Assembly: GCF_902713615.1 (NCBI RefSeq)
Contig: NC_052146.1
Coordinates: forward strand, 183,571,469-183,635,468
Source: Scyliorhinus canicula
Lineage: Eukaryota
DNA length: 64,000 nucleotides
Direction of reading: 5' to 3'
Shown: in pieces, positions 1,709 through 61,254 of the stretch
Layout of the letters: each line of letters opens with the position of its first letter
How positions within the stretch are numbered: position 1 is the stretch's first letter
Position numbers and translations under genes: made by a program
The notes under the pieces: generated by a model
Databases searched by the model: none
What the model was told of the DNA's origin: nothing
The model's input: the letters and a program-made list of their open reading frames with translations, nothing else

Positions 1709-1816
1709 CTTGTTTCTGGGACAAAGTACATTCTGCAGGTTGAAGTGGCGAGAACGCAATGCCGTCTGGAACATGTTGTTGTTCTGCAAATCTGTGAACT
1801 CCATGAATCTCCACAG
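1709..1816 (+). CDS. Cystatin gene 1, exon 2
   Basis: Polypyrimidine tract then TAG acceptor; LVSGTKYILQVEVARTQC...C..SPQ completes QxVxG (Q|LVSG); donor CAG|GTAA; 108 nt. Confidence 0.93.
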
Positions 1817-2053
1817 GTAATTCTACATTTTGTCTTTACAATCATTTGTAGATTTTGGGATCTACTTGGTGGTCTCTGGCCCACAGAGCTAGGGTATAAA
1901 TTCACAATCTGGTTAAGTATCCAATTCAACCCGACTTTTCTACAAAACATTCTTTGTGCCAATTCCAGTGCTTCATAGGACGAATTTTGTTATACGATTT
2001 GGGTTCTTTAAATTAGAATGAACATGTCTTGGAGTAGGATCCTGCACACTTAA

Positions 2054-2363
2054 TCATAAAATCTTAGAATTTACAGTGCAGAAGGAGGCCATTCAGCCCA
2101 TCGGTTCTGCACCAGCCCTTGGAAAGGGCACTCCACTTAAGCCCACACCTCCATCCTATCCCAGTAACCCCACCTATCCTTTTTGGACACGGAAGGGCAA
2201 TTTAGAATGACCAATCCACCTAATTTGCAGATCTTTGGGCTGTGGGAGGAAACCAGAGCACCTGGAGGAAACCCATGCAGACACTGGGGGACCGTGTAGA
2301 CTCCACACCAACAGTGACCCAGGTCCCTGGTGCTGTGAAGCAACAATGCTAACCACTGTGCCA
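2054..2363 (-). mobile_element. V-SINE (HE1-like) in intron 2
   Basis: Reverse complement reads GGCACAGTGGTTAGCATTGTTGCTTCACAGC...GGGTTTCCTCCAGGTGCTCTGGTTTCCTCCCACAG...CTGCACTGTAAATTCT. Confidence 0.85.
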
Positions 2364-3404
2364 CTTATTTTTGAGCACACAGATCTTGAAGTAATGTGCA
2401 GAGGCTTTTCTCAATCCTGGACTGGTTTTGTAACACCTGTTCTCAGCAGCTTTTCCCTGAAGGGAAGCAAGTAGCTTCATAACTTGCAACAGAATATTTT
2501 GTGCTCCTCCAATTCATTAGTTAGGGGCAGCCTAGCCACTTGATGTACAAGATATGTGCCTGGGAATGGTGTGGAATGAAAGAGGACATTTGTGCTGTTG
2601 CCAGCATGGGAATAAAGTTTTCCAAACATTACTTGAGGCCAAAATATAATCTTTTAAGTTATGACGGTAGTTTTTATTTTTTTTTCTAGAAGCTAGCTCT
2701 AGCTAGAACATATCTAGCTCCTTCATGACTTGTGTGCTAATAGGATTATTAGAAAGGGTAGGAGAGGATTGAATATAGATTATTCCCTTGTCTAAAATGT
2801 TGAACTAAATATAATGAAAGGTAAAGTGATGATACTTGCAACGCTTTCCTGCGAGATCCTTCGCCCCACTACAGCGCGCCCACGCCTGCGCGTTTCCTGA
2901 TGGCGTGGAGTGGCCCCCAATTGGAAACCCTGTTGACCAGCTGCAGGAATGGAAAATCTAGCTGCTGGCGAGGGCATGCTGCACCGGAACCATCTTTAAT
3001 TAAATAGATAAATTTATATAATCTGTCATTACCATTGTTTCTGGCGAGATGACCATTTGTATCATACAATTGTATGAGTTTTGTCCAACATTACGTACCA
3101 ATATTATAATGCTGGCATGTTTGTTGGGGGGGGGGGGGGGGGGGGGGGAAGCATTTATTCACAACAGAATGGCTCATACTGATGTGAAGCTCATACTGAT
3201 GTGAAGCTAGGTTTCAATTTAAGCATTGCATCAATTTTCTCCAATGGATTAAAATTTTATTTCTATTCTCAGACATCATTGGAAATAGTTACTTCCAGGC
3301 TTAAGCTACTCCCTGTTGGAGGAGACATGACTATGATATAGTTTAAGTAACAAATAAATCCTGGAAAGGCTATCAAATTTCCAACAATTAATTTTATTTT
3401 TCAG

Positions 3405-3494
3405 ACTAAAATTTGCAACTTTGATGTTCTTTCAATCCCTTGGGACGAAGAAATTACTCTGCTAAAGTCGGAATGCGCACAATCAAAAAAATAA
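3405..3494 (+). CDS. Cystatin gene 1, exon 3 (terminal)
   Basis: TTTTCAG acceptor; TKICNFDVLSIPWDEEITLLKSECAQSKK* with the PW motif and second disulfide pair. Confidence 0.93.
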   Translation, partial: TKICNFDVLSIPWDEEITLLKSECAQSKK

Positions 3495-3659
3495 ATTTCT
3501 ACATTGCTGCAGATTAATTTTCATTTGGTTAATTCTTTAATAATGCTTTCAGCATACTGTACCAATGGAAACTATTGCCTTTACTGTATGGAAATCATGA
3601 TGTATAAAATTACATGCATCACCTACAAAGCAGAATTCCTGTAGCTTCCATTAAAGCTA

Positions 3660-3665
3660 AATAAA
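3660..3665 (+). terminator. Polyadenylation signal of cystatin gene 1
   Basis: AATAAA 165 nt after the stop, followed by T/GT-rich sequence. Confidence 0.6.
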
Positions 3666-3969
3666 AGTTTCTTAACACATCTTGGGGAGTGTCAGCAACA
3701 TGATTTCTTTCTGGGTCCTCGTGCATCTTTGATTCTAATAATTCCTGCTTTGACCTTGGCTAAGATCAAACTGAAGATCGGGTGCAACACATCTTGTCAG
3801 CTTGGATCTTTGAATTGTTTTTTCGAGCAAGCAAGGAGATGGATTAAGAGTTTACCCTGTCCACCCTACGCATCGGCTTTGTAACTTTTAAGAAAATAAT
3901 TTAATAAAAATTAAATGTTATGGTTAAATATGTCATATATTCAAGATAAACCACTTTAAGGCCCATTTC

Positions 3970-6642: not shown

Positions 6643-8519
6643 GATCTAAAGAGAGAGCTGAGACGAGCAAGGAGGGGACATGAGAAGTCTTTGGCAGGTA
6701 GGATCAAGGAAAACCCAAAAGCTTTCTATAGGTATGTCAGGAATAAAAGAATGACTAGGGTAAGAGTAGGGCCAGTCAAGGACAGTGGTGGGAAGTTGTG
6801 TGTGGAGGCTGAGGAGATAAGCGAGATACTAAATGAATACTTTTCGTCAGTATTCACTCAAGAAAAAGATAATATTGTGGAGGAGAATGCTGAGACCCAG
6901 GCTATTAGAATAGATGGCATTGAGGTGCGTAGGGAAGAAGTGTTGGCAATTCTGGACAAGGTGAAAATAGATAAGTCCCCGGGGCCGGATGGGATTTATC
7001 CTAGGATTCTCTGGGAAGCCAGGGAAGAGATTGCTGAGCCTTTGGCTTTGATTTTTAGGTCATCATTGGCTACAGGAATAGTGCCAGAGGACTGGAGGAT
7101 AGCAAATGTGGTCCCTTTGTTCAAGAAGGGGAGTAGAGATAACCCCGGTAACTATAGGCCGGTGAGCCTAACGTCTGTGGTGGGTAAGGTCTTGGAGAGG
7201 ATTATAAAAGATACGATTTATAATCATCTAGATAGGAATAATATGATTAGGGATAGTCAGCATGGTTTTGTGAAGGGTAGGTCATGCCTCACAAACCTTA
7301 TCGAGTTCTTTGAGAAGGTGACTGAACAGGTAGACGAGGGTAGAGCAGTTGATGTGGTGTATATGGATTTCAGTAAAGCGTTTGATAAGGTGCCCCACGG
7401 TCGGCTATTGCAGAAAATACGGAGGCTGGGGATTGAGGGTGATTTAGAGATGTGGATCAGAAATTGGCTAGTTGAAAGAAGACAGAGAGTGGTAGTTGAT
7501 GGGAAATGTTCAGAATGGAGTTCAGTTACGAGTGGCGTACCACAAGGATCTGTTCTGGGGCCGTTGCTGTTTGTCATTTTTATAAATGACCTAGAGGAGG
7601 GCGCAGAAGGATGGGTGAGTAAATTTGCAGACGACACTAAAGTCGGTGGAGTTGTAGACAGTGTGGAAGGATGTTGCAGGTTACAGAGTGACATAGATAA
7701 GCTGCAGAGCTGGGCTGAGAGGTGGCAAATGGAGTTTAATGTGAAGAAGTGTGAGGTGATTCACTTTGGAAAGAATAACAGGAATGCGGAATATTTGGCT
7801 AATGGTAAAATTCTTGGTAGTGTGGATGAGCAGAGGGATCTCGGTGTCCATGTACATAGATCCCTGAAAGTTGCCACCCAGGTTGATAGGGTTGTGAAGA
7901 AGGCCTATGGTGTGTTGGCCTTTATTGGTAGAGGGATTGAGTTCCGGAGCCATGAGGTCATGTTGCAGTTGTACAAAACTCTAGTACGGCCGCATTTGGA
8001 GTATTGCGTACAGTTCTGGTCGCCTCATTATAGGAAGGACGTGGAAGCCTTGGAACGGGTGCAGAGGAGATTTACCAGGATGTTGCCTGGTATGGAGGGA
8101 AAATCTTATGAGGAAAGGCTGATGGACTTGAGGTTGTTTTCGTTAGAGAGAAGAAGGTTAAGAGGTGACTTAATAGAGGCATACAAAATGATCAGAGGGT
8201 TAGATAGGGTGGACAGCGAGAGCCTTCTCCCGCGGATGGAGGTGGCTAGCACGAGGGGACATAGCCTTAAATTGAGGGGTAATAGATATAGGACAGAGGT
8301 CAGAGGTGGGTTTTTTACGCAAAGAGTGGTGAGGCCGTGGAATGCCCTACCTGCAACAGTAGTGAACTCGCCAACATTGAGGGCATTTAAAAGTTTATTG
8401 GATAAGCATATGGATGATAAGGGCATAGTGTAGGTTAGATGGCCTTTAGTTTTTTTTTCCATGTCGGTGCAACATCGAGGGCCGAAGGGCCTGTACTGCG
8501 CTGTATCGTTCTATGTTCT
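6643..8519 (+). mobile_element. 5'-truncated young CR1 LINE
   Basis: Uninterrupted RT ORF, CR1 3'UTR ending in TTCTATG-type repeat, short AAG duplication in the host L1. Confidence 0.92.
6691..8433 (+). CDS. CR1 ORF2 reverse transcriptase (C-terminal 580 aa, open)
   Basis: KSPGPDG, NYRPVSLTS, YMDFSKAFD, GVPQGSVLGP, FADD motifs. Confidence 0.9.
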   Translation: MAGRIKENPKAFYRYVRNKRMTRVRVGPVKDSGGKLCVEAEEISEILNEYFSSVFTQEKDNIVEENAETQAIRIDGIEVRREEVLAILDKVKIDKSPGPDGIYPRILWEAREEIAEPLALIFRSSLATGIVPEDWRIANVVPLFKKGSRDNPGNYRPVSLTSVVGKVLERIIKDTIYNHLDRNNMIRDSQHGFVKGRSCLTNLIEFFEKVTEQVDEGRAVDVVYMDFSKAFDKVPHGRLLQKIRRLGIEGDLEMWIRNWLVERRQRVVVDGKCSEWSSVTSGVPQGSVLGPLLFVIFINDLEEGAEGWVSKFADDTKVGGVVDSVEGCCRLQSDIDKLQSWAERWQMEFNVKKCEVIHFGKNNRNAEYLANGKILGSVDEQRDLGVHVHRSLKVATQVDRVVKKAYGVLAFIGRGIEFRSHEVMLQLYKTLVRPHLEYCVQFWSPHYRKDVEALERVQRRFTRMLPGMEGKSYEERLMDLRLFSLERRRLRGDLIEAYKMIRGLDRVDSESLLPRMEVASTRGHSLKLRGNRYRTEVRGGFFTQRVVRPWNALPATVVNSPTLRAFKSLLDKHMDDKGIV

Positions 8520-8785: not shown

Positions 8786-10130
8786 CTTTTTTTTTAGAAA
8801 ATATTTTATTGAGGAATTTATAATTTTAACAATTTTACCCGTCAAATTTTCAACAAAAAGAAACAAGAAAAATGCAACAATATAACAAACAACCCCCCGC
8901 GCACAAAACCCCAGCCAACATGGCTTACACAAACAGTGCCACCTTCCCCAACTCCTGTCCTTTCTCATCTCTCTCATGCTTCCCCTTCCCCCGACCCCGC
9001 CGCTGACAGCTTAATTCTTCTCGATGAATGGCTGCCACCTCCGAGCAAACCCCTGCAGTAATGATCCTCTCAAAGCGAATTTAATTTTCTCGAGTCTGAG
9101 AAACCCCGCCATGTTACTAACCTGCAACCCCGACTTCGGGGGCTCCGCGTCCCTCCACCCTAAAAGGATCCATCTCCGGGCCACCAGGGAAGCAAAGGCC
9201 AGGACGTCGGCCTCTTTCACCCCCTGGGCTCCCAGGTCTTCCGACACACCGAAGATCGCCACTGTTGGACTCAACAACACCCTCATTTGTAAGACCTCTG
9301 ACATGACGTCAGAAAATCCCTGAAAGAAACCCCTCGGCCTCGCCCAAAACATATGGATATGATTAGCCAGACACCCGCACAGCGCCCACACTTATCCTCC
9401 ACTTCCTCAAAGTACCTGCTCATCCGGGCTACAGTCATGTGCGCCCTGTGGACCACCTTAAACTGTATCAGGCTGAGCCTGGGGCACGACGACGACGCAT
9501 TAACTCTCCTCAGGAACTCCTCCCATAATCAGGCCTCCAACTCCACCACCCAGTTCCTCTTCTCACTTTCTCTTCACCTCCCCTTATGGGCCCCCTCCCA
9601 TTCCATCAGTTAATTATAGATTTCTCAGGCCTTCCCCTCTCCTACTCCTGTTCTCGGCACCACCTTATCCAGTAGCCGCTGGGGCAGCAGGTGCGGGAAG
9701 GTCAAAACCTGCCTCCGCACGAAATCCCTCACCTGCAGATACCGGACCGCATTCCCCCCATGGCAACTCAAACTCCTCCTCCAGGCTAGGGAAACCCTCA
9801 TCAATAAACAGATCTCTAAATGTCTCAAACCCCGCATGCTGCCACCTCCGGAAACCCCCATCTAGCCCCCCCCCCCCCCCCCCCCCCCCTCCGGAGCGAA
9901 CCGGTGGTTGTCACATATCGGTGCCCACGCTGACCCACCCTCTAACCCCCTGTGCTGTCTCCACTGTCCCCAAGCCCTCAGGGCTGTCACCACTACTGGG
10001 CTTGTGGAGTACTGAGCCGGCGAGAACGGCAGACGTGCCATTAAAAGTGCATCCAAACTCATGTCCTTACATGAGGCTGCCTCCTCCCATTCCCATACCG
10101 ACCCCTCCCCCACTACCCACTTCCTGATCA
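8786..10130 (-). mobile_element. 5'-truncated L1/Tx1 (ORF2 C-terminus, 3'UTR, polyA)
   Basis: PolyT at ~8786-8794; ANHIHMFW...KIKFALRGS...WQPFI on -; degenerate TSD GACC(A/G)TAGA. Confidence 0.8.
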
Positions 10131-25907: not shown

Positions 25908-25908
25908 A

Positions 25909-27554: not shown

Positions 27555-27565
27555 AAAGGGGCGAC
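27555..27565 (+). other. Polypurine tract (copy 2 at 37129-37139)
   Basis: AAAGGGGCGAC directly before the TGTAG LTR start. Confidence 0.7.
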
Positions 27566-28812: not shown

Positions 28813-28814
28813 CT

Positions 28815-35480: not shown

Positions 35481-35481
35481 A

Positions 35482-47931: not shown

Positions 47932-48266
47932 GAAAATTCCTTCGGAGAAAATACAGGCAATAGCTGGCTTTCTATAGGTCAGGGTTTATTACACTGAAAA
48001 TACATGCAGGTACATAAAGACATACAGCAATATCGCTTTCATATTCTTCAAGTTCAGTGTTTGACATTTCTATTTAGCTTTAGAGGCAGCAACAATAATT
48101 TTTCTGAGTAGGTCATGCATTTAACATTTGTACAACATGATTTCGATAAGAAAATAAAGGCAAGAGTTGCTATTAGTATACAACTTAAAAGCACAGTGGG
48201 AGCTTTCAGTTAACATATTAAACAGACGTGATCCAAATGTAAATTAATCTGCTGCAATGCAGAAAT

Positions 48267-48356
48267 TCAGTTGTTTGATGGTCTGCACATCATCTTTATC
48301 AGAGACGTTTCTCCTTTCCAAGGGACTGAATAAACATCAAAGTTGCAAAATGTTCT
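48267..48356 (-). CDS. Cystatin gene 2, exon 3 (terminal)
   Basis: TTTCAG acceptor; RTFCNFDVYSVPWKGETSLIKMMCRPSNN*; flanks align to 3228-3680. Confidence 0.9.
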   Translation of the reverse strand, partial: RTFCNFDVYSVPWKGETSLIKMMCRPSNN

Positions 48357-50589
48357 CTGAAAGATTAAATGAATAGTTGGAAATTAGATTGCCGTTCCAG
48401 GATTTATTCCCTCGTTACTTAAACTTATCATGTCACGTCTTCTCCAACAAGAGTGGTTTAAACCTGGAAGAAACACTCTCCAATGACGACTGAGAATAGA
48501 AGTACAATTTTAATCCATTGGAGAAAATTGATGCATATGTTTGAAATATTCAGTGAATCAAGAAAACAGAATCCAGGGATTCTGGTGGGTGAATTGAGAA
48601 CTGAGGGCAGAAGACGCACATTCCCAAGACGGAACAGGACAGGGGTGGAGGTAATCATTTCCAGATGATAGGTGAGTATCGTCAGGGGGTGCAGTTTTGT
48701 GGCAGGAGGGGCTGAACATTGTCAGGGAGGCATCCAGCTGAATTGTTTTGACATTCCAGCTGATTAACTTAGAGCTGTGATGCTGAACAGGTTTTACACC
48801 TGCCAGGAAAAGTTCTAAATAAACCCATGTAAAGACCGGGTTAAGGATAGGACAAACAGTATAGGACAAACAGCCCAAGTCTGTCTGGTTATTACTATTT
48901 TATCACAGTCATCGGGAATTGTGCAGCAATCGAACAAGGTAAAAACAGCAATTGGGAGTTTAAAATTCCCATGCGAGTACGGGCGAATCGTGGGTGGTTC
49001 TACATCCCCGACAGCGGCGCCGGTCCCAGAGCATTTCAGGACATGCTAATGGGCCTGCACCAGTGCCATATGGAACAATGCGATTCTAATTGATGCTGGC
49101 GTTGCAATCGGCCCTGGGGGCCTGACAAGCTGGAGCTGCATATAAGCACTGCACTCCCCACACACTCTCATTACAGCTAAGAAGATGCCAACCGGTGGCA
49201 GCTATGGAGTGGTTGCGTACAGGGCAGCTCCTGCTTAAAGGTGTTGGTTTTGGCCCCTTTTACCCAAACTTTGGAAAAGTTGTGCAGAGTGGAGGAGGAT
49301 AGGTTCTCTCCCGGATGGTCATGTCTGTGGGTTCCCAAACTCGACAGAAGACAGTGAGAACCCTGGCCAAAGAGTTGGAGGAAACTTGGGGCGCAGCATT
49401 ATTTAGAAAAGAAGCGGATGGGAAAGGGTCGTCGTCAACTGGAAAGCTGCAAATGGAGCAGTTGATGAGCTTCATTCAGAACGAATTTTGGCAGCAGCAT
49501 AAGGAAATGCAGAACAACTGGTCTAAGACGATTGAGGGGGCAGTGGCACCTCTTCATGGGACCTTGGATTGGATTAAGGAGAAGAGCCTCATGGTGCAGG
49601 GGGCGACAATCCAGAAAGTAAGGAAGGTGGTGGCAGACCAGAGTGATTGGATTGTGTAGTTGGAGGTGGAGATGGTGATCCTGGGGGACCTGTGTAAGAC
49701 ACTGCAAGCAAAGGTGGCGGACCAAGAAAATTGGTCCAGGCCGCAAAATCTGTGTATTGTGGGCATTCCGGAGGGAATTGCAGGGATGCTCGCCATGTTG
49801 GTGGAAGAGAAGGTGCTGGACAAGGCTCCAGAGGTGAATCGGGCCTATGGGTCCCTGTGGCAGAGGCCAAGAACGGGGGAGCCGCCACAGGCAGTGAATG
49901 TGCTATACACAAGTTCCAGGACAAAGTAAAGATTCTGAGGTGGGCCAGGGTCTGGTGAACTGTGAGTGGAAAGGAAATTGAATCTGGATCTATCAGGACA
50001 TTGGAGTGGAGCTTGCCCAGGCGGGCAAGGCTACAGCAGTGCTGTATTGGTGCCAGATTCCGTTTGTGATGTTGTACCCGGTTAGACTTTGGCTACCCAG
50101 TTTTGCTGACTGGGAAATGTTGGAAGGGGGTGATTGGTTGTCAATCTGTTGCATCTTTTGCATTTTTTGTGTTGTTGGCCCATTTGTTATCTCTTGTGTT
50201 TTGGTATTTTGCACTGATTGCTGCTTGTTTTGGAGGGGGTCCTTCAGTGTTGGGGTTATAGTGTTTAGTTTTAATGCACTCTGTTGATTGTGCTCAGTGC
50301 AGGGTATGAGGGGCTGAGCTGGATTGGGGTGGGGTGGTTAGAGAATACTCTGTCGGGGGCCATGTTGGGATGAGGTTTGGAGAGGAGTAGGGGGGATGCA
50401 GGTGGGATGGGTAGAGGAGGGGGGCCTTCGGGTGATAGTCAATGGAAATTAAGTGGGGGGGCCACGGTGTTTAGCTAGGGAGGGTTCGGAGAGGAGTGGC
50501 TGGTGGGGAGGTGATGTGGCGGTAAAGGAGGATGAATTTGGTCATGGAAGGGGCGGTGGGTCATCTTGGGTGGGCCCGATTTTTTTTTC

Positions 50590-50931
50590 ATGGAATTTAC
50601 AGTGCAGAAGGCCATTCGGCCCATCGAGTCTGCACCGGCTCTTGGAAAGAGTACCCTGCCCAAGGTCAACACCTCCACCCTACCCCCATAACCCAGTAAC
50701 CCCACCCAACACTAAGGGCAATTTTGGACACTAAGGGCAATTTATCATGGCCAATCAACCTAACCTGCTCATCTTTGGACTGTGGGAGGAAACCGGAGCA
50801 CCCGGAGGAAACCCACAAAGACACGGGGAGAACGTGCAGACTCCACACAGACAGTGACCCAAGCCGGAATCGAACCTGGGACCCTGGAACTGTGAAGCAA
50901 TTGTGCTATCCACAATGCTACCGTGCTGCCC
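50590..50931 (-). mobile_element. V-SINE (HE1-like)
   Basis: Head with GGTTCGATTCC, V-domain, tail CTGCACTGTAAATTC. Confidence 0.85.
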
Positions 50932-51395
50932 TTGGCCCTAGATTGGGGGTGGGGAAGCGGAGCCTAAGGGTGAAGATAGAGGACTCTAAGGGGAGGGGAG
51001 ACAGAAGCATCCGGTGAGAATCGTGACATGGAATGTCTGTGGGCTAAATGGAACGGTTAAGTGGTCCCGGGTGTTCGCGCATTTGAAGAGTTTGAGAGCA
51101 GAGGTGATTTTCTTGGAGGAGACACAACTCCGGGTGAAAGATCAGATGAGGTTGAGGAAGGGGTGGGTGGAGAAAGTGTTCCATTCGCGGTTTGACTCGA
51201 AGTCATGGGGGGTTGCCATATTGTTGAGCAAGGGGGTGCTAGGGAAGTGAGGGACTGGAGGCGAGAGGTTTGTGATAGTGAGTGGGGACACCAGTGGTGT
51301 TGCTGAATGTGTACGCGCCTAATTGGGTCGATACCAGATTCATGAACAGGCTATTTGGGGCGATCCCGCACTTGGACTCTCACCAGCTGATTATG

Positions 51396-51428
<33 letters not shown>

Positions 51429-51826
51429 GTTTCCAATTGTGTATTGGATACGAGTAGGATAGGTCGAGCCCCAAGTCGATGGGGTGGTCGATAATGGTGA
51501 GAGAGCTGGGTGGATTTATGAAGAGGATGGGGATCGTGGATCCGTGAAAGTCGGACACCTGGGGGTGAGGGAGTATTCCTTCTTCTCGCATGTGTGTAGG
51601 GTTTATTCCAGTATTGACTTTTTTGTGGTGCCCCGGGCGGTGTTGATGGAGGTCAAGGGTGCAGAGTAAGCGGGGAAGAATGATTTTGCACCATGCTCCC
51701 GCACTTTCTAGATGTGAGACTTGGTTCGGGTCAGGCGCAAAGGCCAGGGTAGAGGTTAGATTTGGGCTCTTGGCCAAGAGGGTGTTCTGTGGGCAGGTGA
51801 TGGTGGCGATTAAGAATTATGTTGAG

Positions 51827-52294
51827 TCCAAACATAGCAATATCTGGAGTGTCGGAAGATCCAGGAGCCTGGGGGGGGGGGGGGGAGAGTAGCCGACATT
51901 TTGGCCTTTGCCTCCCTTGTGGCCCGGAGATGGATTTTGTTGGGATGGCGGGACTCGAGTCTCCAAAGTCGGGGGTTTGGGTCAGTGACATGGCAGGGTT
52001 TCTTAAGCTACAGAAAATTAAGTTCACTTTAAGGGGTTCAGTACAGGGGTTCGCTCGGAGGTGGCAGCCGTTCATTGACTTCTTCAAGGGAAATTGACCG
52101 TCAGTTGGGGGGGTGGGGGGCAGGAAGCATGGAAGGGACGGATAAGGGCAGGGAATCTAATGTATGGGTAGTTAAGGTTTAGGGATGGAGGGAGTTGGTT
52201 GTGTTATTGCGGCGTTCTTGAGTGTGTTGGATATCGCTCTTTAAAACGTTAAAAATGTTATTATAAATGCGTCAGTAAAATATTTTCCAAAAAA
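51827..52294 (+). mobile_element. 5'-truncated L1 3' fragment nested in L1
   Basis: 15-bp TSD AAGAATTATGTTGAG at 51812-51826 and 52295-52309. Confidence 0.8.
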
Positions 52295-54130
52295 AAGAAT
52301 TATGTTGAGCTCAGACTGGAGAGGTATCGGTAGCCACGTTTTGGGAGGCCCTGAAGGCAATAATTCGGGGGTGGAAATTATTTGGTTCAAGGCCCATAAG
52401 AGTAGGATGAGGATGGAGGAGCATCGCCGACTGTTGGATGAGGTAGTAGAGGTGGATAGGAGATATTCTGTGGCCCCCACGAAGGAGTTGTTGGCTGAAA
52501 GGAAGAAGCTGAAGGGGCAGTTTGACGACAGGTAGAGCGATGAGTCAGCTAGGTGGGTGAGGGGTGCAGTATGAGTATGGGCAGAAGGTGAGTCGCGTGC
52601 TGGCCCACCAGCTGCAGTGGCAGGCAGCGTCGAGGGAAATTCTTCACGTGAGGGCACAAAGGTGGGATGGAGTGCATTGACATGATGCAGTCGGGTAAAG
52701 AGCTGGGGCCAGGTGGCTTCCCGGCGGAATTTTATAAGTAATTCGCGACGGAGCTGGCCCCCCATCTTTTGGGCCTGTAAAGTGAAGTGGTGGAAAAGGG
52801 GGAGTTTCTGGATACGTTTGCGTAGGCATCGATTTCACCGATTCCAAAAAAGGGTCAGGATCCATTGGAGTGCGGGTCCCATAGACCTATCTCGCTGCTG
52901 AAAGTCCTGGCAAAGATATTAGAGAGAAGGTTAGAGGGGTGTATGCTGGAGGTGGTTTCAGAGGACTAAATGGGCTTTGCGAAGGGGAAGTTATATTAAG
53001 AGGTTGCTGATTGTAATTATGACCCCGTCAGGAGGGCAAGTGCCAAAGGTGATCGTGCCGATGGACGTGGAGATTGGGTACAGTGCAGGTACCTGTTTGA
53101 GATTTTGGGGAGGTTTGGGTTTGGGCCGAGGTTTCTGGCGTGGGTCTGGTTGTTATATGTGCCCCCATGCAAGTGTGTGAACAAATGAGACGAACTTCAG
53201 GTATTCTGGGTTGCATAAGGGCATGGGTTAGGGGTGCCTGCCGTTGTTTGTGTTAGCGATTGAGCCCTTGGCAAGGACACTTCAGGCCTCAATTGAGTGG
53301 CAGGGGATTGAGAGGATGGACAGGGAACACCGGGGAATCTTGTACGCTGATGACCTGTTATTGTTCATATCAGACCCGTTGGAAAGTATGGGCAGACTCA
53401 TGAGCTTACTGGAGAGGTTTGGGGGTTTTTTTCGGGTTATAAATTGAATGTAGAGATAAGTGAGGTGTTTCCGGTGAATACGGTGCCCCCCGGCTAGAGG
53501 GGGGGGGACACACGACGACTCCTGATGGCTCTGCCATTTAAGGTGGCGAGGTAGCAGTTTTGCTACCTGGTGCTCCAGGTAATGCATGAGTGGGCTACAA
53601 TGCATAGGTGGAACCTGATGGGGTAGGTGAAGGAGATCAAAGGGGATCTTAAAAGGTGGCAGGGAGGGTGCAGGTGGTGAAGATGAACATGCTGCCAAGA
53701 TTGCTGTTTCTGTTTTAGTCCCTCCCGATACCCCTCCCCCCCAGGCCTTTTTCTGGAGGGTGGATGCACTGGTATCAGAATTTGTGTGAGCTGGGAAGAT
53801 GCCGAGAGTGAAGAGGGCTTTGTTGCAACGGCAGAGTCGGGAAGTGGGGTTGGCTCTTCCGAACCTGTTACATTACTTTTGGGCAGTGATGCGGAATAAG
53901 ACGATGATGGGAGGGGGTGGACAGGGTCAGGTTGGAGGAGGGGTCTTTTAAGATGCCTCTCGCTCCGAGGAAGCATACGGTGAGTCCAGTGGTGGAGTCG
54001 ACTATAAAAATCTGGAAGCAGCTGAGGAGGTACTTTAAACTGGGTCACATGTTGGTGTTGACGCCAATGTGAGGGAATCACACTGGCTCAAGCTGGAGGG
54101 GATGGATGGGATGTATAGGCGTGGACTTAG

Positions 54131-54440
54131 GGGTGGCACGGTAGCACAGTGGCTAGCACTGTTGCTTCACAGCACCAGGAATCCGGGTTTGATTCCCGGA
54201 TTGGGTCACTGTCTGTGCAGAATCTGCACTTTCTCCCTGTGTCTGTGTGGGTTTCCTCCGGGTGCTCCAGTTTCCTCCCCCAAGCCCCGAAAGATGTGCT
54301 GTGAGGTGAATTGGACATTCTGAATTCTTTCCCCGTGTACCCGAACAGGCGCCGGAATGTGGCGAATACGGGTTTTCACAGTAACTTCATTGCAGTGTTC
54401 ATGTGAGCTTACTTGTGACAATAAAGATTATTATTATTAT
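54131..54440 (+). mobile_element. V-SINE with an alternative 3' tail ending (TTA)n
   Basis: GGTGGCACGGTAGCACAGTGG head, V-domain, tail shared with 8652-8758. Confidence 0.8.
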
Positions 54441-55329
54441 GATGGCGGGAGATGGGGTTGGGGCAGCTCGGAGGAGAACTTTGCTGGGCTAGAGGAGCGG
54501 GAGAGGTTTGAGTTTAGGTATTGGCAGGTGCGGGACTTTGCGCATAAGAAGCTGTCTTCGTTCCCTCAGGTACCGGAGTATACACTTCTCAAGAAACTGC
54601 TGCTCCCGGATTAGGTGGGAGATAGCAAGATTAGGGATATATATGGATGGCTGGGAGAGCAGGGCAGGACAGTACCGAAAAGGATCAAGCGGAAGTGGGA
54701 GGAGTTGGGAGGGAGATATAATGGAAACTTTGGTGTGAGGTAATGCGGCGAGTGAACTCAACCTACTCCTGCACAAGAATGAGTTTGATATAATTTATGG
54801 TGGTGCACGGGGTCCACATGACTCGGGCTCGGATGAGTGGTTTTTTTTCCTGGGGACAGCAGACGGGAGCAAGAAGTGTGGGAGGGAGGCTGGCAAATCA
54901 TGCTCATATGTTCTGGGGTGTGAGGAGTTGGAGTCCTTTTGGGAGACGAAGTTCGGAACACAATCAAGGATTGTACGGGTTGAGGTGAAGTAGGACCATA
55001 TGTGCCAGAGCTGCTGGAGGGGAAGGGGGCGATGTCGTGGCCTTTGCCTTTCTGATTACTCAGCTTTTGTATTGGAGGTCGGCTACGCCATCAGGGGTTG
55101 CGGCATGTCTGGGGGATCTGTACAAATTTCTCAGGTTGGAGAAGATCAAATTAGCTTTATGGGGGCTTTGAGGTATGGTGGAGGCCTTTCATGGCTATAT
55201 TTGAGGACCTGTTTGTCGTTGGTGGAGGGGGAATTAAAAGGGGAAAAATGTACAAACTACATTTTGATTGGATGTTAAGCTAGTGTTAATTTGTTGAATG
55301 TGTTTGAAATTAAATATCCTGTGCATAAT

Positions 55330-57200
55330 ATGTCCGCCCTAGAAAAGGCAGCCCTCAACCGCAGGGGCAGAGAGAAAACCGGAGAGGGCCCACCGCACCT
55401 GTGGTCCCTCACCCTAGCAGAGTCCTGGGCGTTGGACCTAGTCGGTGGGGTTGTCATCAGAGACGCAAGTGAGCCCCCGACGATCCGGTCTTGCAGGATC
55501 ACCTGGCGGCGAGGCGAATCCCCCCCGCCACCGCAACCCGGAGACATAATGAGTTGATGAGGCAGGACCTGTTGGTGACCCTCGCTCGCCACTGCAACCT
55601 CGCTCCCCACTCCTTCAGCATATCGCCCCTCTGCTTCACAATGTTGTGGAGGACGCAGCAGGCCATCACAATGACCACGCCGATGCACTGTTCGATCACG
55701 CTGCTGGTCGCAGCATGAGCATCGTTGTAGCGGTTCTCCACGTTGGTGTGGCCTCCTGATAGGCGAGATCAGCCACGACCGCAGCAGACAGCAGATAACC
55801 CCTGTCGTCCGGAAGCCAACCACTCACCCGGGGGAGCATTTTGAACGTGTTGGGCACCATCGAGTGCACCTGTGCACGGAGGTCTGGGAGATCTTGGAAG
55901 GACCCTGTTGCAACGAGGTTTAGGGTTCGTCATTCTCAGTCATTCCCCCTGACACTTTTCCCTCCACACCGCACCCCTGGCGCCGGTGCCTGGTACGGAA
56001 GGAGGGGGGGGGGGGCGCGGTTCTGGTGGCTGACACCACCCGTGCCAGAGGTACGCTCTGTGGACCTTGTCCTCCACCGTCCTGTGGGGTCCACTGTGGG
56101 TGTCCTTCTTGGCCGAGCCATGTGATACCCCGCCAGCAAGCACTAGGTTGTTGGGGGAGCGGTAGGGTGGGTGCAGTGCACCAAACGGCCTCATGCTTGG
56201 TGGCATGTGTGCGGGCAGGGCTCGGCCAAGGAGATGGGCACCTGTTGGGACCACAGCTGAGGTGTCTGTGGGTCCTTTATGCAGCTCACCGGTTGTGTCT
56301 ACTCCCTGAGGGCAGGGACGCAGTGGGCAGGCAGGGCTTGGTGACAGCTGGCAGTCCTGTAGGGTAGGCTAACTGAGGGTGTCACTGGCAGGACATCTGC
56401 TCTGCGAGAGGCAGCTGTGTCAAGGAGGGTGCTGATGCCCACGGTACATATGTCTGCCGATCCAGGCCTGTTCCATGGCTTCCCGCTGCCCCTGCAGTGG
56501 GGCAACGCCTCGGATGGGCGCACTGGGGAGTGCCAACACCTGATGGACCACTGGCTGCACTGGGCCACGCCAATCCCATTGATGGTCAGCTGGAGTCTGT
56601 GGGAAGGGGGGGGGGGGGGGGGGGGGGGGGGGGAGGGAGCCCCTATATGGCCGATGGCGCTCTGAACATCTATGGGTCACAGTGGGCATTCGGTGGGGTG
56701 CGCAGCCACAATGGGTGCCTTGCAAGTCGCGGCAATGCCGGTCAGTGCCTGGATACCCTGGTCGTCTACAGCCCATCTCATGGTCATCCCCCGCCAACAC
56801 TGGCAAGAGGCCCCCGGCCTTTGCATCTTTGGCAACATGGCAACTCTTCTCTCGCCTCCATTAGCCATGGCTCCTGTTTTCCGATTTTAAATACCATAAG
56901 TGAAGCACGCCATTGTCACTTCTGTCTGGTGGAGGCAGAGCATCACGGGAAACCAGAGGCTACCAGGTCGGGCCTGTTAATGATATGTGTTACTGTACAA
57001 TTTGCATGCCCATGCTGGCACATGGCACAAAATGCATTCACATCACTATCGAGGCACCAGTGCATGGCATTCTGTTGGGCAGCCGACGCCAAGCTCGATT
57101 TTTGACCGACGTGCAATTCTACACCCATTCACGATTCGCAATATGAGCATCGCTGGACGGAGAGTCCCACCCATAATGTTTCACAAAAAGTGAGTGAGAA
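55330..57200 (-). mobile_element. Rearranged Harbinger remnant (HARBI1-like transposase C-terminus on -)
   Basis: ENRYNDAHAAT..VIEQC, CCVLHNI. Confidence 0.6.
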
Positions 57201-57279
57201 TTACACACAGTAGTTCAAAATAATATGAGATTAACGGAAAAATTGCGATTTTCCATCAGCCACGCCAAAAATCAGGAAA

Positions 57280-59169
57280 GCGATTGGATGGAGAATCGGT
57301 CATACGGACAGAATTATGACTGGTGTCGGGCACCCAGGATGCCAAGCTCCGGTGCCTCAACAGTAGTGTCTATGCTTTCTACTCCGCCTGTACAGTAAAC
57401 GGCATCGCATATCATAAGCAGGCCTGACCTGGCGTTCTTTGTGACCTCTGCGATGCTCTGCCTGGAGGAATTACCAACGGCGAGTTTCACTTGTAGTTTC
57501 AGAAATCAGGAAACAGGCCGATGAAAGTGAGAGAGAGGAAGTAGGACATGCAGAGGCATGACCGTGGGCTGCTGGTCCTGCCACTGGCAGGGCTGTCTGG
57601 GAGAGGGCGGAGATGTCTGCCAGGCCCAGAGGGGGCAGTGGGGGGACCAGGGAATGGGCTGTGGGGTTCGAGTGACACCCCATAGGACCGGGGCGCCCAG
57701 GCACAGACTGCCATTGCCGTGGCCTGCAAGGCAGCCATCTTGCTGTGCACCCTACTGACCACCGTCTGTGGCCCATCGTTGTGCAGAGTGACACCAACCA
57801 TATGGGTGCCCCCAACCCACCACTCCAGCATTCCACTCCCCCTTCCCCCCAAACAGGCCACCATCCGCCGGTGGGGCAGCATGCGGCCCACCCAAGGAGT
57901 GTGGAGGGCAGAGTGCCAGGGGGAGCGATTGAGGGTGGTTTTGGGAGGAGAGGCTGCAGACCGGGGCCTGTTGAACCTGTTTAGGGATGCGGATGCGTAC
58001 CATACTTCGGAATCCAGCCAGGAATAGTGGTCTTCATCCTATGTGTCACAGCCCTGGCGGATGCACTGAGACTTTATGAGCTGGAACAGCGGAGCCTGTC
58101 CCAGAGGAACAGGAGCCAGCCGGTGAGGATGGAGAGCCGGCCGCCCAACAGGCCGAGGAGGAGGTGGGAAGGAGGCACCGCATGAGGCCTCGTGTGTCCC
58201 GGCAGCGCTTGTCATTCGAGGACTTCAGGACCGGGCTTGACATCACAGACACAGGCTGAGATGGGGGACAGTGCAACATATCTGCCAGATCATGGTGCAC
58301 CTGCACTGCGGGGGTATGGGGGAAGGACCCTGGTAGTGATGACTGTCAAGGCGACGGTTGCCCTGAACTATTACGACACAGGGTCCCTCCAGGTGCAGAG
58401 TGGGGACCTGTCTGGGATCTCACAGACCTCGATGCACAGGTGCATCCCGTCATCACGGAGACCCTATATGCCCGGTTGGCACAATATATCAAATTCAGTG
58501 CGGACCAAACCAACCAGGATACCTGGGCAGTGGGGTTCGCCACCATCGCAGAGATGCCCCGGTTCCAGGGAGTGATCAGTGGGATGTATATCGCCCTACA
58601 AGCACCAGCCCATGATCGGCCGATCTTCATAAACCTTAAGGGGTTCCACTCGATGAACGTGCAGCTGGTGTGTGACCATGAGATGCACATCATGCACATC
58701 TGCGCCCGATGCCAGGGCAGTGTAGCGCTAGGCGAGTCTCCCGCATCTTCGTGACCTGCTGCGTCCTCCACAACATCGCGCAGCAGAAGGGTGACAAGCT
58801 GGAGGAGGAGGATGAACATCAGATCTCATCCGATGAGGAGGATGCGGAGATGGGCAAGGATGGACAGGGCATGGGGCCCCCGTCCCCACACCTCCCACTC
58901 CCTGAAGTGCCCCTGCAGCCAGCCCAGCCCAACCCATCTGTCACACCCTTCTGACAGAGCTGCAAGGCAGGTTGAAAAGTTGTGAACAGGTGTTTATTGG
59001 GAAATGTTGATCATATGCATGCAGGTTTGTGCCCTAGCCTGTGATGCTATATTGTGTGCTGCACCCATGCCAGCCTAACTAGTGTCAACCTTGCTGGCCT
59101 TACGGACTGCTGTACGGGTTAGGTGGATTGGCCATGCTAAATTGCCCGTAGTGTCCTAAAAAGTAAGGT

Positions 59170-59201
<32 letters not shown>

Positions 59202-59800
59202 GTTGGGTTACGGGTATAGGGTGGATACGTGGGTTTGAGTAGGGTGATCATTGCTCGGCACAACATCGAGGGCCGAAGGGCCTGTTCTGTGCTGTACTGT
59301 TCTATGTCTAACGCTATGCTGAGGTGGCTCCCTAGGCATAGCGTTCAGGAATGGAAGAGGAGGCCTGCTACGATACGTGCCCTGTGACCTGGGTCCCCTT
59401 TGTGGGCCATCTTCTGGATCGATCGGGCCTGGATGGTCCACACTGCTATACAGTGTCCCATGCGGCGTGGTGCCGCCCTGGGTCTGCCTGTTGCCCATCA
59501 CATGCACCAGGGGAAGGAGGGGAGGGGGGGGATTTCCAGGCGCTGTGGTGTTCCGCCACCTCCCCTGCAGAAATCAATAGCACGGCCCCATCGCCTCCTC
59601 CTCCCTCAGTGTGCTGATGGCTCTCGGGCTCCTCCATGGGATGGGGGTACGAGTGGAGAGAACTCCAGAGGTTCCGCTGCCACCTGGCACTGCCAATCCT
59701 GGAGGCCCGCACCCATCTCAACCAGGGACTCAATGCTCACGGCCATGGAGCACAGGGAGTGGACCACCTCCCTCTGGAACCGTGCCACATCACCCTATGA
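57280..59800 (+). mobile_element. Harbinger element (HARBI1-like DDE remnant +, Myb-like remnant -), with a SINE 3' fragment at ~59114-59310
   Basis: VALNYYDTGS.Q..SGDLSGISQ, PRFQGVI, FINLKGFHSMNVQLVCDH, CCVLHNI. Confidence 0.7.
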
Positions 59801-59859
59801 CTGTGCCACCACCTTATGGATCTGTGCACATGTGCACATCAGCCAATTTTGCACACCAA

Positions 59860-60660
59860 CATCTTATGTTGGCTTTGTCAAAAGCTTTCTGAAAATCCAA
59901 ATACATCACAACCACTGGCTCACCCTGATCTATTCCACTAGTTACATCCTTGAAAAAACTCCCAAGAGATATGTCAAACATGATTTCCCTTCCATAAATC
60001 CATGTTGACTTGGTCCAATCGATTGATAGTTTCTAAGTGCCCCGTGTTCACATCCTTTTATCATATTTCCCAACTACAGATATTAGGCTAACCGATCTAT
60101 AATTCAGTTGTCTCCTTTCCTTTTTTTAAAAAATATATAGCAGGGTTACATATGCTTCATTTGCCACCCTTCAATTTGCTGTACTGTTCCAGAAGAAAGG
60201 TGACAAACAATGCATCCATTATTTCCATGGCCAACTCCTTGTACCCTTGAATGTAGATTATCAGGCTCTGAGGATTTATCGGCTTTCAGTGCCATTGATT
60301 TGTCCAACAGTATTCTTTTAATAATTAAAATCTCCTTCAAATCCTTGGCTCAGTATCATTTCTGGGAAATAAAGTAGTTGTTTAATTGTTCTGCCATTTC
60401 CTTATTCTCCATTATAAATTCTCCCATTTCAGACTGTAAGGGAACAACATTTTTCTTTTTACATAATTATAGAAGCTTTTACAGTCCGCTTTTATGTTAC
60501 TTACAAGATTACTCATGCTCTATTTTTCCCTTCTTAAGATATCTCTTGGTCTTTGCTGAATTCTGAACTGCTCCTAATCCTCAGGCTTAATACTCCTCCT
60601 AGCAACTTTACAGGATTCCTCTTCATTATAATACTTTCCACAATTTATTTAGTTAGCCAT
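59860..60660 (-). mobile_element. Ancient CR1 RT remnant
   Basis: DKSSEPDNLHSR and degenerate QHGF.EGKSCL, DFQKAFDK on -. Confidence 0.65.
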
Positions 60661-60789
60661 GCGTGGTGGGGCCACATTGCTTGTTGTGGTTTTGTATCAG
60701 AAAGAATGTATAACTTTTGCAATGCAACACTTAATAAAACAGCTAAGGAATCTGCTCCCCTCCTGAACCAATATGTGGGCCAGAAATAA

Positions 60790-61082
60790 TTGATTCACAG
60801 AATCGCTAAGTGCAGAAAGAGGCCGTTCAGCCCATTAGGTCTGCATTGACCCTTCGAAAGACCACCCTACCTGGACCCAATCCCCCTCCCTGTTACTCCA
60901 GCCTAAGGGGAAATTTAGCATGGCCAATCCATTTAACCTGCACATCTTTGGTTGTGAGAGGAAACCTTCGCAGACTTGGGAAGAATGTGCAAATTCCACA
61001 CAGTCACCCAAGATCGAAATCGAACCTGGATCGCTGGCGCTGTGGGGCAGCAGTGATAACCACTGTGACACCGTATCGCCCA
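60790..61082 (-). mobile_element. V-SINE (older copy)
   Basis: tRNA head GGTTCGATTTCG, core and tail on -. Confidence 0.75.
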
Positions 61083-61146
61083 TTAGATCCTAAAGTCCAG
61101 AAATTCTGTGCTCCATTAATTGTAAAAACAAAATGTAAAGTTTTAC

Positions 61147-61254
61147 CTGCGGAGTTGCTGCAAAATCACAGGTTTCCAGATCTTGAACCTCGCTCTTCTT
61201 ACATTGTGTTCTCCCCAGTTCAACCTCAAGATAGTACTTCATCCCAGCAACAAC
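61147..61254 (-). CDS. Cystatin gene 2, exon 2 (exon 1 outside the window)
   Basis: TTTCAG|VVAGMKYYLEVELGRTQCKKSEVQDLETCDFAATPQ|GTAAAA; 108 nt, same phase as gene 1. Confidence 0.92.

Follow-up and report, generated by a model that had tools for sequence, protein, structure and literature searches.

This 64-kb window of the Scyliorhinus canicula genome holds a tail-to-tail pair of type-2 cystatin genes (cystatin C-like), gene 1 on the + strand and gene 2 on the - strand, whose divergence probably reflects adaptive amino-acid replacement on the gene 1 lineage after an old inverted duplication, gene 2 being near-ancestral. Such a pattern is a well-known hallmark of duplicates that diverged adaptively, and not a new kind of element. 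The coding exons differ more than the introns because one copy accumulated amino-acid changes at roughly double the neutral rate of DNA change, and the introns look 'better conserved' than the exons because the genome evolves slowly and the introns, UTRs and silent sites of both copies register neutral divergence only. The lineage to gene 1 would have undergone sustained adaptive amino-acid replacement following duplication, limited to what exons 2 and 3 encode (strand beta3, the first disulfide loop and appending region, beta4, L2 and beta5), with the scaffold and canonical inhibitory motifs retained throughout. Gene 2 would have stayed near the ancestral shark sequence, drifting under weak constraint, and the selective agent may have been a changed protease target or changed binding conditions.

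The 3' ends of the two genes face each other across a gap of ~44 kb, and the orientation is therefore convergent; these gene models on opposite strands bear out the convergent cystatin paralogues proposed in a preliminary description of this DNA, which are of type 2. Coding exon 1 of gene 1 (220..429, +; ATG at 220; donor CAG/GTAAAG) matches Pfam Cystatin (35.7 bits). From it come the N-terminus, which is signal-like, and the helix, along with the trunk Gly, the SND legumain site and the first residue, Q, of QLVSG. Intron 1 (430..1708, +) contains a SINE-like copy (~893-1168) and is paralogous to gene 2 intron 1 over 1301-1708. Exon 2 (1709..1816, +; 36 codons; Pfam Cystatin, 22.6 bits) supplies LVSG to loop L1 and also encodes strand beta3 and the Cys88-Cys99 loop, and the densest replacement cluster spans the Cys88 to Cys99 codons (1760..1795, +). 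The 1.6-kb intron 2 (1817..3404, +), with a SINE-like insertion at ~2060-2364, is 87% identical to gene 2 over its final ~185 nt, and is followed by coding exon 3 (3405..3494, +; 29 codons and TAA), which provides strands beta4 and beta5 and the PW of loop L2, and by a 3'UTR (3495..3680, +) with AATAAA at 3660-3665.

Gene 2 enters the window within intron 1 (61255..64000, -, partial), which is paralogous to gene 1 intron 1 over 61255-61912, is interrupted by a SINE (~61421-61665), and past 61912 is repeat-like and unrelated to gene 1. A tblastn search of the window found no second exon 1; that of gene 2 lies past the window end. Exon 2 (61147..61254, -; 36 codons; Pfam Cystatin, 32.3 bits) starts with VVAG, intron 2 (48357..61146, -) is enlarged to 12.8 kb by SINE-like and other repeats (the S. 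torazame orthologue has a span of 28.9 kb), and coding exon 3 (48267..48356, -) has 29 codons and TGA. Within the 3'UTR (47985..48266, -) the site homologous to the gene 1 AATAAA reads AATAGA (48074), with the next AATAAA at 47990, and homology of the 3' region to Heptranchias reaches as far as 47944. Splice sites are canonical throughout both genes, and the window contains zero ambiguous bases (N).

The spliced gene 1 product is 100% identical to P0100, the NCBI 'cystatin-like' protein of Scyliorhinus canicula; no gene 2 product of this species was found in the protein collection searched. Both genes match Pfam Cystatin (PF00031). The reading frame of gene 1 is open, its splice sites are canonical, and its AlphaFold model is a confident cystatin (pLDDT 89.8), with cystatin C, chicken cystatin and cystatin E/M matched by Foldseek at TM-scores of 0.86-0.91; the product retains QLVSG, PW, the trunk Gly, the SND legumain site and all four Cys. 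Both copies are probably expressed. Like vertebrate type-2 cystatins (cystatin C / chicken egg-white cystatin; MEROPS I25B), the pair combines a secreted-type N-terminus, trunk Gly, SND, QxVxG, PW and two disulfides with a three-exon structure whose first intron directly follows the Q of QxVxG, and among solved structures chicken cystatin ranks as the closest relative (E = 2e-30), ahead of cystatin C. A 2009 superfamily survey entered cystatin C as absent from Chondrichthyes (PMC2784779); contrary to that survey, cystatin C-like genes are clearly present in shark genomes. The catshark-lineage pair is unlike other type-2 cystatins in that one copy has had half of its exons 2-3 residues replaced.

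Divergence between the copies was compared over the 65 codons of exons 2 and 3. Identical residues number 16/36 in exon 2 (37/108 nt differences, 4 silent changes in conserved codons) and 13/29 in exon 3 (24/87 nt differences, 0 silent changes in the 13 conserved codons), figures that reproduce every hand count of the preliminary description exactly. Its claim that exons are more diverged than introns also holds, with nonsynonymous differences at 52/152 sites (34%), synonymous differences at 9/43 (21%, not distinguishable from noncoding) and 17-22% difference in alignable introns and UTR. Pooled noncoding differences (134-153 of ~788) are separated from nonsynonymous ones by Fisher tests (p = 4e-6 to 1e-4), as are those of a stricter ungapped five-species alignment (160/715; p = 0.003). 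When exons are aligned with gaps, as the introns were, the raw exon-versus-noncoding contrast drops to p = 0.10, a treatment that is not meaningful for coding exons of equal length. Pairwise rates are dN = 0.458 and dS = 0.241 (omega = 1.9); alone, the pairwise dN-versus-dS test is non-significant (Fisher p = 0.135) and the bootstrap interval of omega reaches 1.0. Noncoding K2P distances are 0.13-0.29, and exon 3 has a dS of only 0.10 and is flanked by the most similar intron block.

The 3' end of intron 2 (~3222-3404 vs 48541-48357) is 87% identical between copies, close to the ~85% first noted, and intron 1 (1301-1708 vs 61912-61255, with the SINE at ~61421-61665 removed; blastn and pairwise alignment) and the 3'UTRs can indeed still be aligned, at 76-87% and 78-80% identity, respectively. 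Shark introns evolve slowly; gene 1 intron 2 is still ~70% identical (68-71%) to that of Heptranchias, from a different superorder, ~60% of its non-SINE sequence is alignable, and the intron 1 region also aligns.

Coding sequences from Stegostoma, Rhincodon and Heptranchias (zebra shark, whale shark and sevengill) served as outgroups. dN to Stegostoma is 0.41 for gene 1 and 0.20 (omega 0.31) for gene 2, which looks like the ancestral copy, and a relative-rate test counts 19 unique replacements in gene 1 versus 3 in gene 2 (p = 0.0009). Branch codon models give gene 1 an omega of ~7 (6.3-7.2) against a background of ~0.4 (0.43), with p ~2e-4 relative to a one-ratio model. For this branch omega = 1 is rejected under all three topologies at p = 0.005-0.009, or p ~0.04-0.06 after Bonferroni correction over 7 branches for a foreground picked post hoc, and the observed statistic was reached in 3/400 null simulations (parametric bootstrap). 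The gene 2 branch, with omega ~0.75, is not different from 1. Positive selection after duplication, as first suggested, is thus supported as far as omega > 1 goes, and a dN/dS <= 1, named at the outset as evidence against it, is rejected for gene 1 in these 65 codons with outgroups; the excess of replacements falls almost entirely on gene 1 rather than on both copies. An arms race, to which the preliminary description likened the selection, is a candidate cause. Ancestral reconstruction over the same codons assigns 32 replacements and 1 silent-only codon to gene 1, and 13 and 6 to gene 2 (Fisher p = 0.007). Many changed codons carry 2-3 differences, and multinucleotide mutations may inflate branch tests, a concern partly answered by counting each changed codon once, which still gives p = 0.003. 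The gene 1 branch has ~54 nonsynonymous and ~2 synonymous changes, with ~24 nonsynonymous changes expected from its noncoding branch length of 0.156. When gene 1 is compared with S. torazame, 16 replacements are common to both species, 10 sites have different derived residues and 6 replacements are S. canicula-specific.

On the gene 1 branch, 17/36 codons of exon 2 and 15/29 of exon 3 were replaced; exon 1, with omega 0.42-0.52, evolves at the background rate, and the acceleration is confined to exons 2-3. The paralogous proteins differ at 14/48 exon 1 positions and at 37/65 positions of exons 2-3 (p = 0.004). Between Cys88 and Cys99, 8/10 residues were replaced on the gene 1 branch and 3/10 on that of gene 2, a loop enrichment that is marginal (Fisher p = 0.044). 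In human cystatin C the Cys73-Cys83 loop is the legumain exosite loop, whose chemistry determines legumain affinity and pH dependence (PMC4506564). The Cys88-Cys99 loop of gene 1 is, by homology, its equivalent, and change in gene 1 would most likely target this legumain-facing loop, shifting it from charged to hydrophobic. The preliminary description had the changes touching the inhibitory loops with Cys kept; the Cys are retained, but loops L1 and L2 are a minor target, with just 3/32 gene 1 replacements in or beside them and both motifs within consensus, the hot spot instead being the Cys88-Cys99 loop.

Functional introns, in which an enhancer, splicing element or embedded RNA gene keeps the introns alike and the exons merely look fast, are very improbable. 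Because their divergence equals synonymous divergence, the introns are not unusually conserved, and dN > dS stands without any intron comparison. A block ~150-180 nt upstream of exon 3 does hold a 29-nt run identical in both copies and is recognisable in Heptranchias, but Heptranchias similarity covers most of intron 2 rather than one element, and conservation of the block's distal part does not extend to Stegostoma or Rhincodon. An Rfam search of the conserved intron 2 block matched no family and its RNA fold is not unusual (folding z-scores of -0.66 and -0.23), so that a conserved intronic element, raised earlier as a possible cause of the similarity, is largely refuted. We also doubt strongly that there was no positive selection, with one copy decaying or barely constrained and omega > 1 arising as noise in 65 codons plus multinucleotide mutations. 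Neutral decay cannot raise dN over dS and intron divergence, and the fast copy is the intact, annotated gene 1, whose exon 1 is constrained. In favour of this reading, the gene 2 branch omega of 0.75 is not different from 1, and gene 2 is absent from the protein collection and has a mutated homologous poly(A) signal. The non-significant pairwise Fisher test and the pairwise bootstrap interval touching 1.0 would suit such noise, but the gene 1 branch carries ~54 nonsynonymous versus ~2 synonymous changes, and omega = 1 is rejected by chi-square, parametric bootstrap and codon-event count.

The inverted duplication of the preliminary description is seen in the inverted pair, with the correction that it is old, both copies being carried by S. 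torazame and the shared stem being short. In a noncoding tree gene 1 and gene 2 pair together at 93% bootstrap (shared stem 0.049, gene 1 0.156 and gene 2 0.119 substitutions per site), and noncoding site patterns number 27 for this pairing and 8 and 15 for the others; most of the support lies in distal intron 1 and at the 3' end of intron 2, and relationships around exon 2 and in the 3'UTR are star-like. In protein trees the gene 2 type clusters with orectolobiform cystatins at 82-94% support and the branch leading to gene 1 is long; these trees are 16-23 log-likelihood units worse when the Scyliorhinus paralogues are forced together (AU p = 0.07). Because protein and noncoding trees conflict, the main rival is a duplication older than the split of orectolobiform from lamniform and carcharhiniform sharks, after which lineages kept different copies and, in catsharks, conversion between the inverted copies, named in the preliminary description as a refuting explanation of the intron similarity, repeatedly homogenised introns, UTRs and silent sites; we regard it as rather unlikely. 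Selection would then preserve existing amino-acid differences rather than drive rapid directional change, and conversion would make the pair look younger by dS and intron distance than it is, and push dN/dS up. The patchy noncoding support and the protein-tree conflict are what would be expected of partial gene conversion, for which inverted neighbours such as these are good partners, and the low exon 3 dS (0.10) beside the most similar intron block fits as well. The gene 2 type groups with Stegostoma, Rhincodon and Hemiscyllium in the protein trees (82-94%), where an 'ancient duplication' constraint tree is at most 2-3 log-likelihood units off the best, compared with 16-23 for paralogue monophyly. 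Such monophyly is, however, not formally rejected (AU p = 0.07), and the joining of the fast gene 1 to the outgroup points to long-branch attraction. A few gene 1 residues also occur in Mustelus and lamniform proteins, but homoplasy is rife in the family and 'derived' gene 1 residues occur even in chicken cystatin. No noncoding block favours gene 2 with Stegostoma (site patterns 8 vs 27 and 15), and their synonymous distance of 0.64 is the largest among all pairs. Replacement sites lie scattered by the dozen inside exons of 90-108 nt, and conversion tracts would need to have bypassed them; 10 gene 1 sites changed differently in the two Scyliorhinus species, and gene 1 omega is near 7 under alternative topologies too.

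In MHC class I genes, introns are homogenised by recombination or conversion while selection keeps coding differences. The introns of the catshark copies are likewise more alike than their exons but, unlike those of MHC class I, their noncoding distances fit simple neutral divergence, and conversion tract structure is not proven here. Serpin reactive centres are reportedly hypervariable (Hill and Hastie 1987), and venom PLA2 genes are reported to show accelerated evolution (Nakashima et al. 1993). In Protobothrops small serum protein genes, the coding regions of paralogues outpace the introns and UTRs, and nonsynonymous change is greater than synonymous (PMC6609765). On both counts the catshark pair resembles the snake venom and serum proteins known for 'accelerated evolution'. 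Those venom, serum and inhibitor systems form large tandem arrays with most members accelerated, whereas the catshark pair consists of two inverted copies with one-sided acceleration in 2/3 exons. Positive selection is documented in the duplicated cystatins of Cotesia bracoviruses (Serbielle et al. 2008; PMC2553070), which share omega > 1 and post-duplication divergence with the catshark pair. Selected sites in the bracoviruses lie around the papain-binding sites, in a parasite-host conflict (PMC2553070), whereas the catshark genes are shark host genes with 3/32 replacements at L1/L2 and a hot spot in the first disulfide loop, on the legumain side.

The two cystatin genes of the window have diverged at an accelerated rate since duplication, with nonsynonymous change (dN) significantly exceeding synonymous change (dS) on the lineage of the plus-strand copy, gene 1. 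Gene 1 has three exons (exon 1 at 220-429, with the ATG at 220; exon 2 at 1709-1816, 108 nt; exon 3 at 3405-3494), and exons 2 and 3 of gene 2 lie on the minus strand (61254-61147 and 48356-48267) with a 12.8-kb intron between them, with canonical splice sites throughout. The 3' ends of the two genes face each other about 44 kb apart, and the pair is thus convergent. At the site homologous to the AATAAA poly(A) signal of gene 1, gene 2 reads AATAGA (48074, minus strand), and the next AATAAA lies 84 nt downstream (47990). No second exon 1 was found in the window, which has 0 N bases, by blastn or by tblastn with shark cystatins, so exon 1 of gene 2 lies beyond position 64000; homology of gene 2 to intron 1 of gene 1 stops at 61912, with unrelated repeat-like sequence beyond. 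Once spliced, gene 1 encodes a 135-aa protein that matches the NCBI cystatin-like protein of S. canicula (P0100) at every residue, and among the profile-search matches in the protein collection none was a gene 2 product of S. canicula. Weak expression, a missing annotation or a defect in the off-window exon 1 are possibilities for gene 2. Both types occur in S. torazame (gene 1-like protein P0098 and gene 2-like protein P0097), which makes the duplication older than the split of these two species.

Searching the protein representatives with exon 1 returned shark cystatins. The Mustelus protein, used as a single query, matched itself only, and a four-sequence profile recovered family members throughout the cartilaginous fishes. 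Gene 1 and the Stegostoma, Rhincodon and Heptranchias genes have in common three coding exons, phase-0 introns, a 108-nt exon 2 and a first intron directly after the Q of QxVxG, an exon structure that human CST3 matches. By every sequence and fold criterion applied, both genes are predicted to be ordinary type-2 cystatins (I25B, PF00031). Gene 1 exon 1 (35.7 bits), gene 1 exon 2 (22.6 bits) and gene 2 exon 2 (32.3 bits) all score above the Pfam Cystatin (PF00031) cut-off of 22.2 bits, and PF00031 is precomputed for P0100. The papain-binding wedge of gene 1 is complete (N-terminal G26, QLVSG and PW), and gene 1 keeps the trunk Gly, SND and all four Cys; G26, Q70, V72, G74 and W119 are invariant columns of a 36-sequence alignment. 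The gene 2 wedge shows xVVAG and PW, its Gly and Q positions falling in exon 1, off the window. C88, C99, C110 and C130 are also invariant, are present in both genes and would form two predicted disulfides in the C-terminal half. The gene 1 N-terminus includes a hydrophobic stretch, a possible signal peptide, with a model-predicted helix at residues 6-24. The AlphaFold model for gene 1 is confident (pLDDT 89.8) and has the cystatin fold of a five-stranded sheet round a helix, with TM-scores of 0.86-0.91 to 8v57, 1yvb_I, 4n6m and 3gax (cystatin C, chicken cystatin and cystatin E/M), and the nearest solved sequence is chicken cystatin (E = 2e-30). The L2 motif is AW, not the canonical PW, in Stegostoma, Rhincodon, Hemiscyllium, Heptranchias and one Pristiophorus copy (genomic loci L001, L002 and L003; P0011, P0095, P0101, P0099 and P0104), and PW is kept in both catshark genes, Mustelus and lamniforms.

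The preliminary description held that the exons of the paralogues diverge faster than their introns, and its hand counts were reproduced on recounting: exon 2 has 16/36 identical residues and 37/108 nt differences with 4 silent changes among conserved codons, and exon 3 has 13/29 identical residues and 24/87 nt differences with 0 silent changes in 13 conserved codons. The noncoding similarity was recovered as well, the last ~185 nt of intron 2 being 87% identical between copies, intron 1 76-87% (gene 2 SINE removed) and the 3'UTR 78-80%. The observation is real and is better worded as replacement sites outpacing silent and noncoding sites, since 34% of nonsynonymous sites differ between the copies, compared with 17-22% of noncoding and 21% of synonymous sites. 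Nonsynonymous differences (52/152) exceed noncoding differences in pairwise alignments (p = 4e-6 to 1e-4) and in a stricter five-species ungapped alignment (160/715 noncoding sites; p = 0.003), and synonymous differences (9/43) are at the noncoding level in both comparisons. Over the 65 shared codons, the Nei-Gojobori method yields dN = 0.458, dS = 0.241 and omega = 1.9 between gene 1 and gene 2, a pairwise ratio that is non-significant alone (Fisher p = 0.135; bootstrap 95% interval 1.0-4.2).

The exact coding sequences of Stegostoma, Rhincodon and Heptranchias were extracted for comparison over exons 2-3. Relative to Stegostoma, gene 2 has dN 0.20 and omega 0.31 and gene 1 has dN 0.41 and omega 0.97, with dN 0.15 and omega 0.23 for the background comparison of Stegostoma with Heptranchias; synonymous distance is lowest for the catshark pair, at 0.24, and reaches 0.37-0.64 in comparisons with the outgroups. 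In relative-rate tests, gene 1 has 19 unique replacements to 3 in gene 2 with Stegostoma as outgroup (p = 0.0009), and 16 to 8 with Heptranchias. A purpose-written Goldman-Yang codon model, applied to 65 codons with the foreground branch picked after data inspection, gives omega 6.3-7.2 on the gene 1 branch and 0.43 elsewhere. The one-ratio model is rejected (p about 2e-4), as is omega = 1 on the gene 1 branch by likelihood-ratio test under all three five-taxon topologies (p = 0.005-0.009), and a parametric bootstrap under omega = 1 reached the observed statistic in 3/400 simulated data sets. On the same branch dN is 0.355, compared with a noncoding branch length of 0.156. Ancestral reconstruction places 32 replacements and 1 silent-only codon on the gene 1 branch, compared with 13 and 6 on that of gene 2 (Fisher p = 0.007); with changed codons counted once each, as a guard against multinucleotide events, 1 silent change in 33 on gene 1 is still too few (p = 0.003). 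The gene 2 branch (omega 0.75) is distinct neither from 1 nor from background. The earlier interpretation, positive selection after an inverted duplication, is partly upheld, for the replacement excess and the rejection of omega = 1 on gene 1, but the introns are unspecial and the excess is one-sided.

That the introns are unspecial follows from a distant comparison. Intron 2 of gene 1 is 68-71% identical to that of Heptranchias perlo over most of its non-SINE length, and parts of intron 1 and the 3'UTR also align to Heptranchias, which belongs to the other shark superorder; the split of the two superorders is deep in age, and shark introns thus retain alignable sequence across great spans of time. 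A conserved element within the intron, whether enhancer or RNA, was rejected given this alignment along most of intron 2, the lack of Rfam families in the window and a conserved intron block that folds no better than shuffled sequence. Two other candidates, a frameshift-compensated stretch in exon 2 and exons imported from a third divergent paralogue, are ruled out by stepwise intermediates in S. torazame and by exon silent sites as similar as the introns, respectively.

The age of the pair bears on the main rival explanation, in which the duplication is possibly older and gene conversion has homogenised the silent sites. In the noncoding tree (715 ungapped columns), gene 1 and gene 2 group together (93% bootstrap) on a shared stem of 0.049, short beside their separate branches (0.156 and 0.119), which marks the duplication as old, and noncoding site patterns uniting the two number 27 against 8 and 15 for the alternatives. 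Most of this support lies in two blocks, the distal part of intron 1 and the 3' end of intron 2, with no resolution in the other blocks, and such patchiness would suit conversion, as would protein trees that place the gene 2 type with orectolobiform cystatins and gene 1 on a long branch beside the outgroup; however, no noncoding block favours gene 2 with Stegostoma, and even chicken cystatin shares 'derived' residues of gene 1. Forcing the catshark paralogues together in the protein trees costs 16-23 log-likelihood units (AU p = 0.07), an exon 1-only protein tree gives no resolution, and codon likelihoods of the three five-taxon topologies lie ~1 log-likelihood unit apart, without discrimination. 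As the outgroup is joined to the fast gene 1 branch, the protein trees give no reliable date for the duplication, and we attribute their conflict with the noncoding tree mainly to the acceleration of gene 1, through long-branch effects and homoplasy. Under conversion, selection would still be needed, preserving the differences instead of driving them.

The acceleration of gene 1 is confined to part of the protein. Its exon 1 evolves at the background rate (omega 0.42-0.52), and the paralogue types differ at fewer protein positions in exon 1 (14/48) than in exons 2-3 (37/65; p = 0.004). The inhibitory loops, earlier described as touched by the changes, are not the main site of change, as only 3/32 gene 1 replacements fall in or beside L1 or L2 and both QLVSG and PW are kept. 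In the first disulfide loop (Cys88-Cys99, gene 1 numbering), 8/10 residues are replaced in gene 1 (enrichment p = 0.044) and 3/10 in gene 2, the gene 1 loop having gone from charged to hydrophobic. The equivalent Cys73-Cys83 loop of human cystatins is the legumain exosite loop, whose chemistry accounts for differences in affinity and pH behaviour between cystatins C and E/M (PMC4506564), a contrast that the gene 1 change resembles. Loop change and human exosite role together provide a concrete hypothesis for the target of selection: the first disulfide loop beside the legumain-reactive Asn, not the classical papain-binding loops, would be the specific, testable structural target. In a bolder reading, which we offer tentatively and consider rather improbable, gene 1 would be a catshark-lineage cystatin re-tuned on its legumain-facing side with the papain-type wedge kept, and gene 2 would preserve the ancestral inhibitor. 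If true, this would represent a natural switch of specificity on one face of a double-headed inhibitor. Re-tuning might also combine with conversion homogenising introns over the 45-kb inverted pair while selection protects the exons.

Sixteen gene 1 replacements are common to S. canicula and S. torazame, 6 occur in S. canicula alone, and 10/65 sites carry differing derived residues in the two species (protein level), so change in gene 1 continued past their split. At the protein level, the same sites thus appear to have changed repeatedly in independent lineages. Between S. canicula and S. torazame, orthologues (P0100 with P0098; gene 2 with P0097) share only 72-78% of their residues over exons 2-3 and, for gene 1, 77% over the mature portion encoded by exon 1. 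Stegostoma and Rhincodon, of different families, differ by just ~6 replacements in the same 64 codons. By this comparison both catshark genes seem to be fast-evolving even recently. At 1778-1786, gene 1 encodes three Val in a row (GTT GTT GTT), a stretch that is Val-Asp-Asp in S. torazame and Val-His-Asp in the inferred ancestor; the two identical A-to-T changes in adjacent codons could reflect a small templated event, not independent hits.

Positive selection after cystatin duplication has been described in bracoviruses (PMC2553070), and exons evolving faster than introns, as in the catshark pair, are the classical accelerated-evolution signature of snake venom and serum protein genes (PMC6609765). 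The pair does not reveal a new kind of system; it is of value because the acceleration is one-sided, is limited to two exons and points to the loop on the legumain side. It is a clean, small vertebrate case of asymmetric adaptive divergence after duplication, in which the slow shark genome leaves introns alignable and so supplies an internal neutral yardstick. A literature search on selection in shark or catshark cystatins found no relevant paper. A 2009 survey reported cystatin C to be absent from Chondrichthyes (PMC2784779); this is superseded by current shark genomes, which carry cystatin C-like genes (profile search), and in cartilaginous fishes such genes are changing quickly even between congeneric species.

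No other host genes were recognised between the two cystatins. A tandem endogenous retrovirus (18012-38438, plus-strand ORFs; LTR - internal - LTR - internal - LTR) occupies 20 kb of the spacer and encodes protease and RT, RNase H, integrase and a TLV_coat-type env, with pol in at least 3 ORFs. Its units (18012-27735 and 27592-37309) show 8 mismatches over 9.7 kb (99.8% identity), and the third LTR is 96.7% identical. So close a match between the units points either to a very recent event or to duplication in the assembly. LINE fragments (reverse transcriptase; Exo_endo_phos-type endonuclease) lie in the spacer at 6691-8433, 11582-12310, 16165-17109 (minus strand) and 38474-39217. Inverted repeats at 13980-14927 and 39990-41274 (0.5-1 kb, 72-79% identical, no family assigned) were rejected as part of the duplication, as they lie in a repeat-rich stretch, adjoin LINE-like ORFs and show no collinearity with the two cystatins. 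Copies of a SINE-like family (~893-1168, 2060-2364, 50588-50926, 54136-54326, 60809-61071 and 61421-61665; 66-81% alike) sit at differing intron positions in gene 1 and gene 2; they inserted independently after the duplication and make up some of the intron sequence that does not align. Across the window, eleven runs of G or of C, each 19-31 nt long (3126-3148, 9866-9889, 15240-15263, 46519-46540, 51398-51427, 56606-56633, 59170-59200, 63120-63141, 63760-63781 and others), may be repeat tails or may stem from sequencing or assembly. A tandem duplication of a ~54-nt unit (~63893-64000) lies at the window end, within intron 1 of gene 2.
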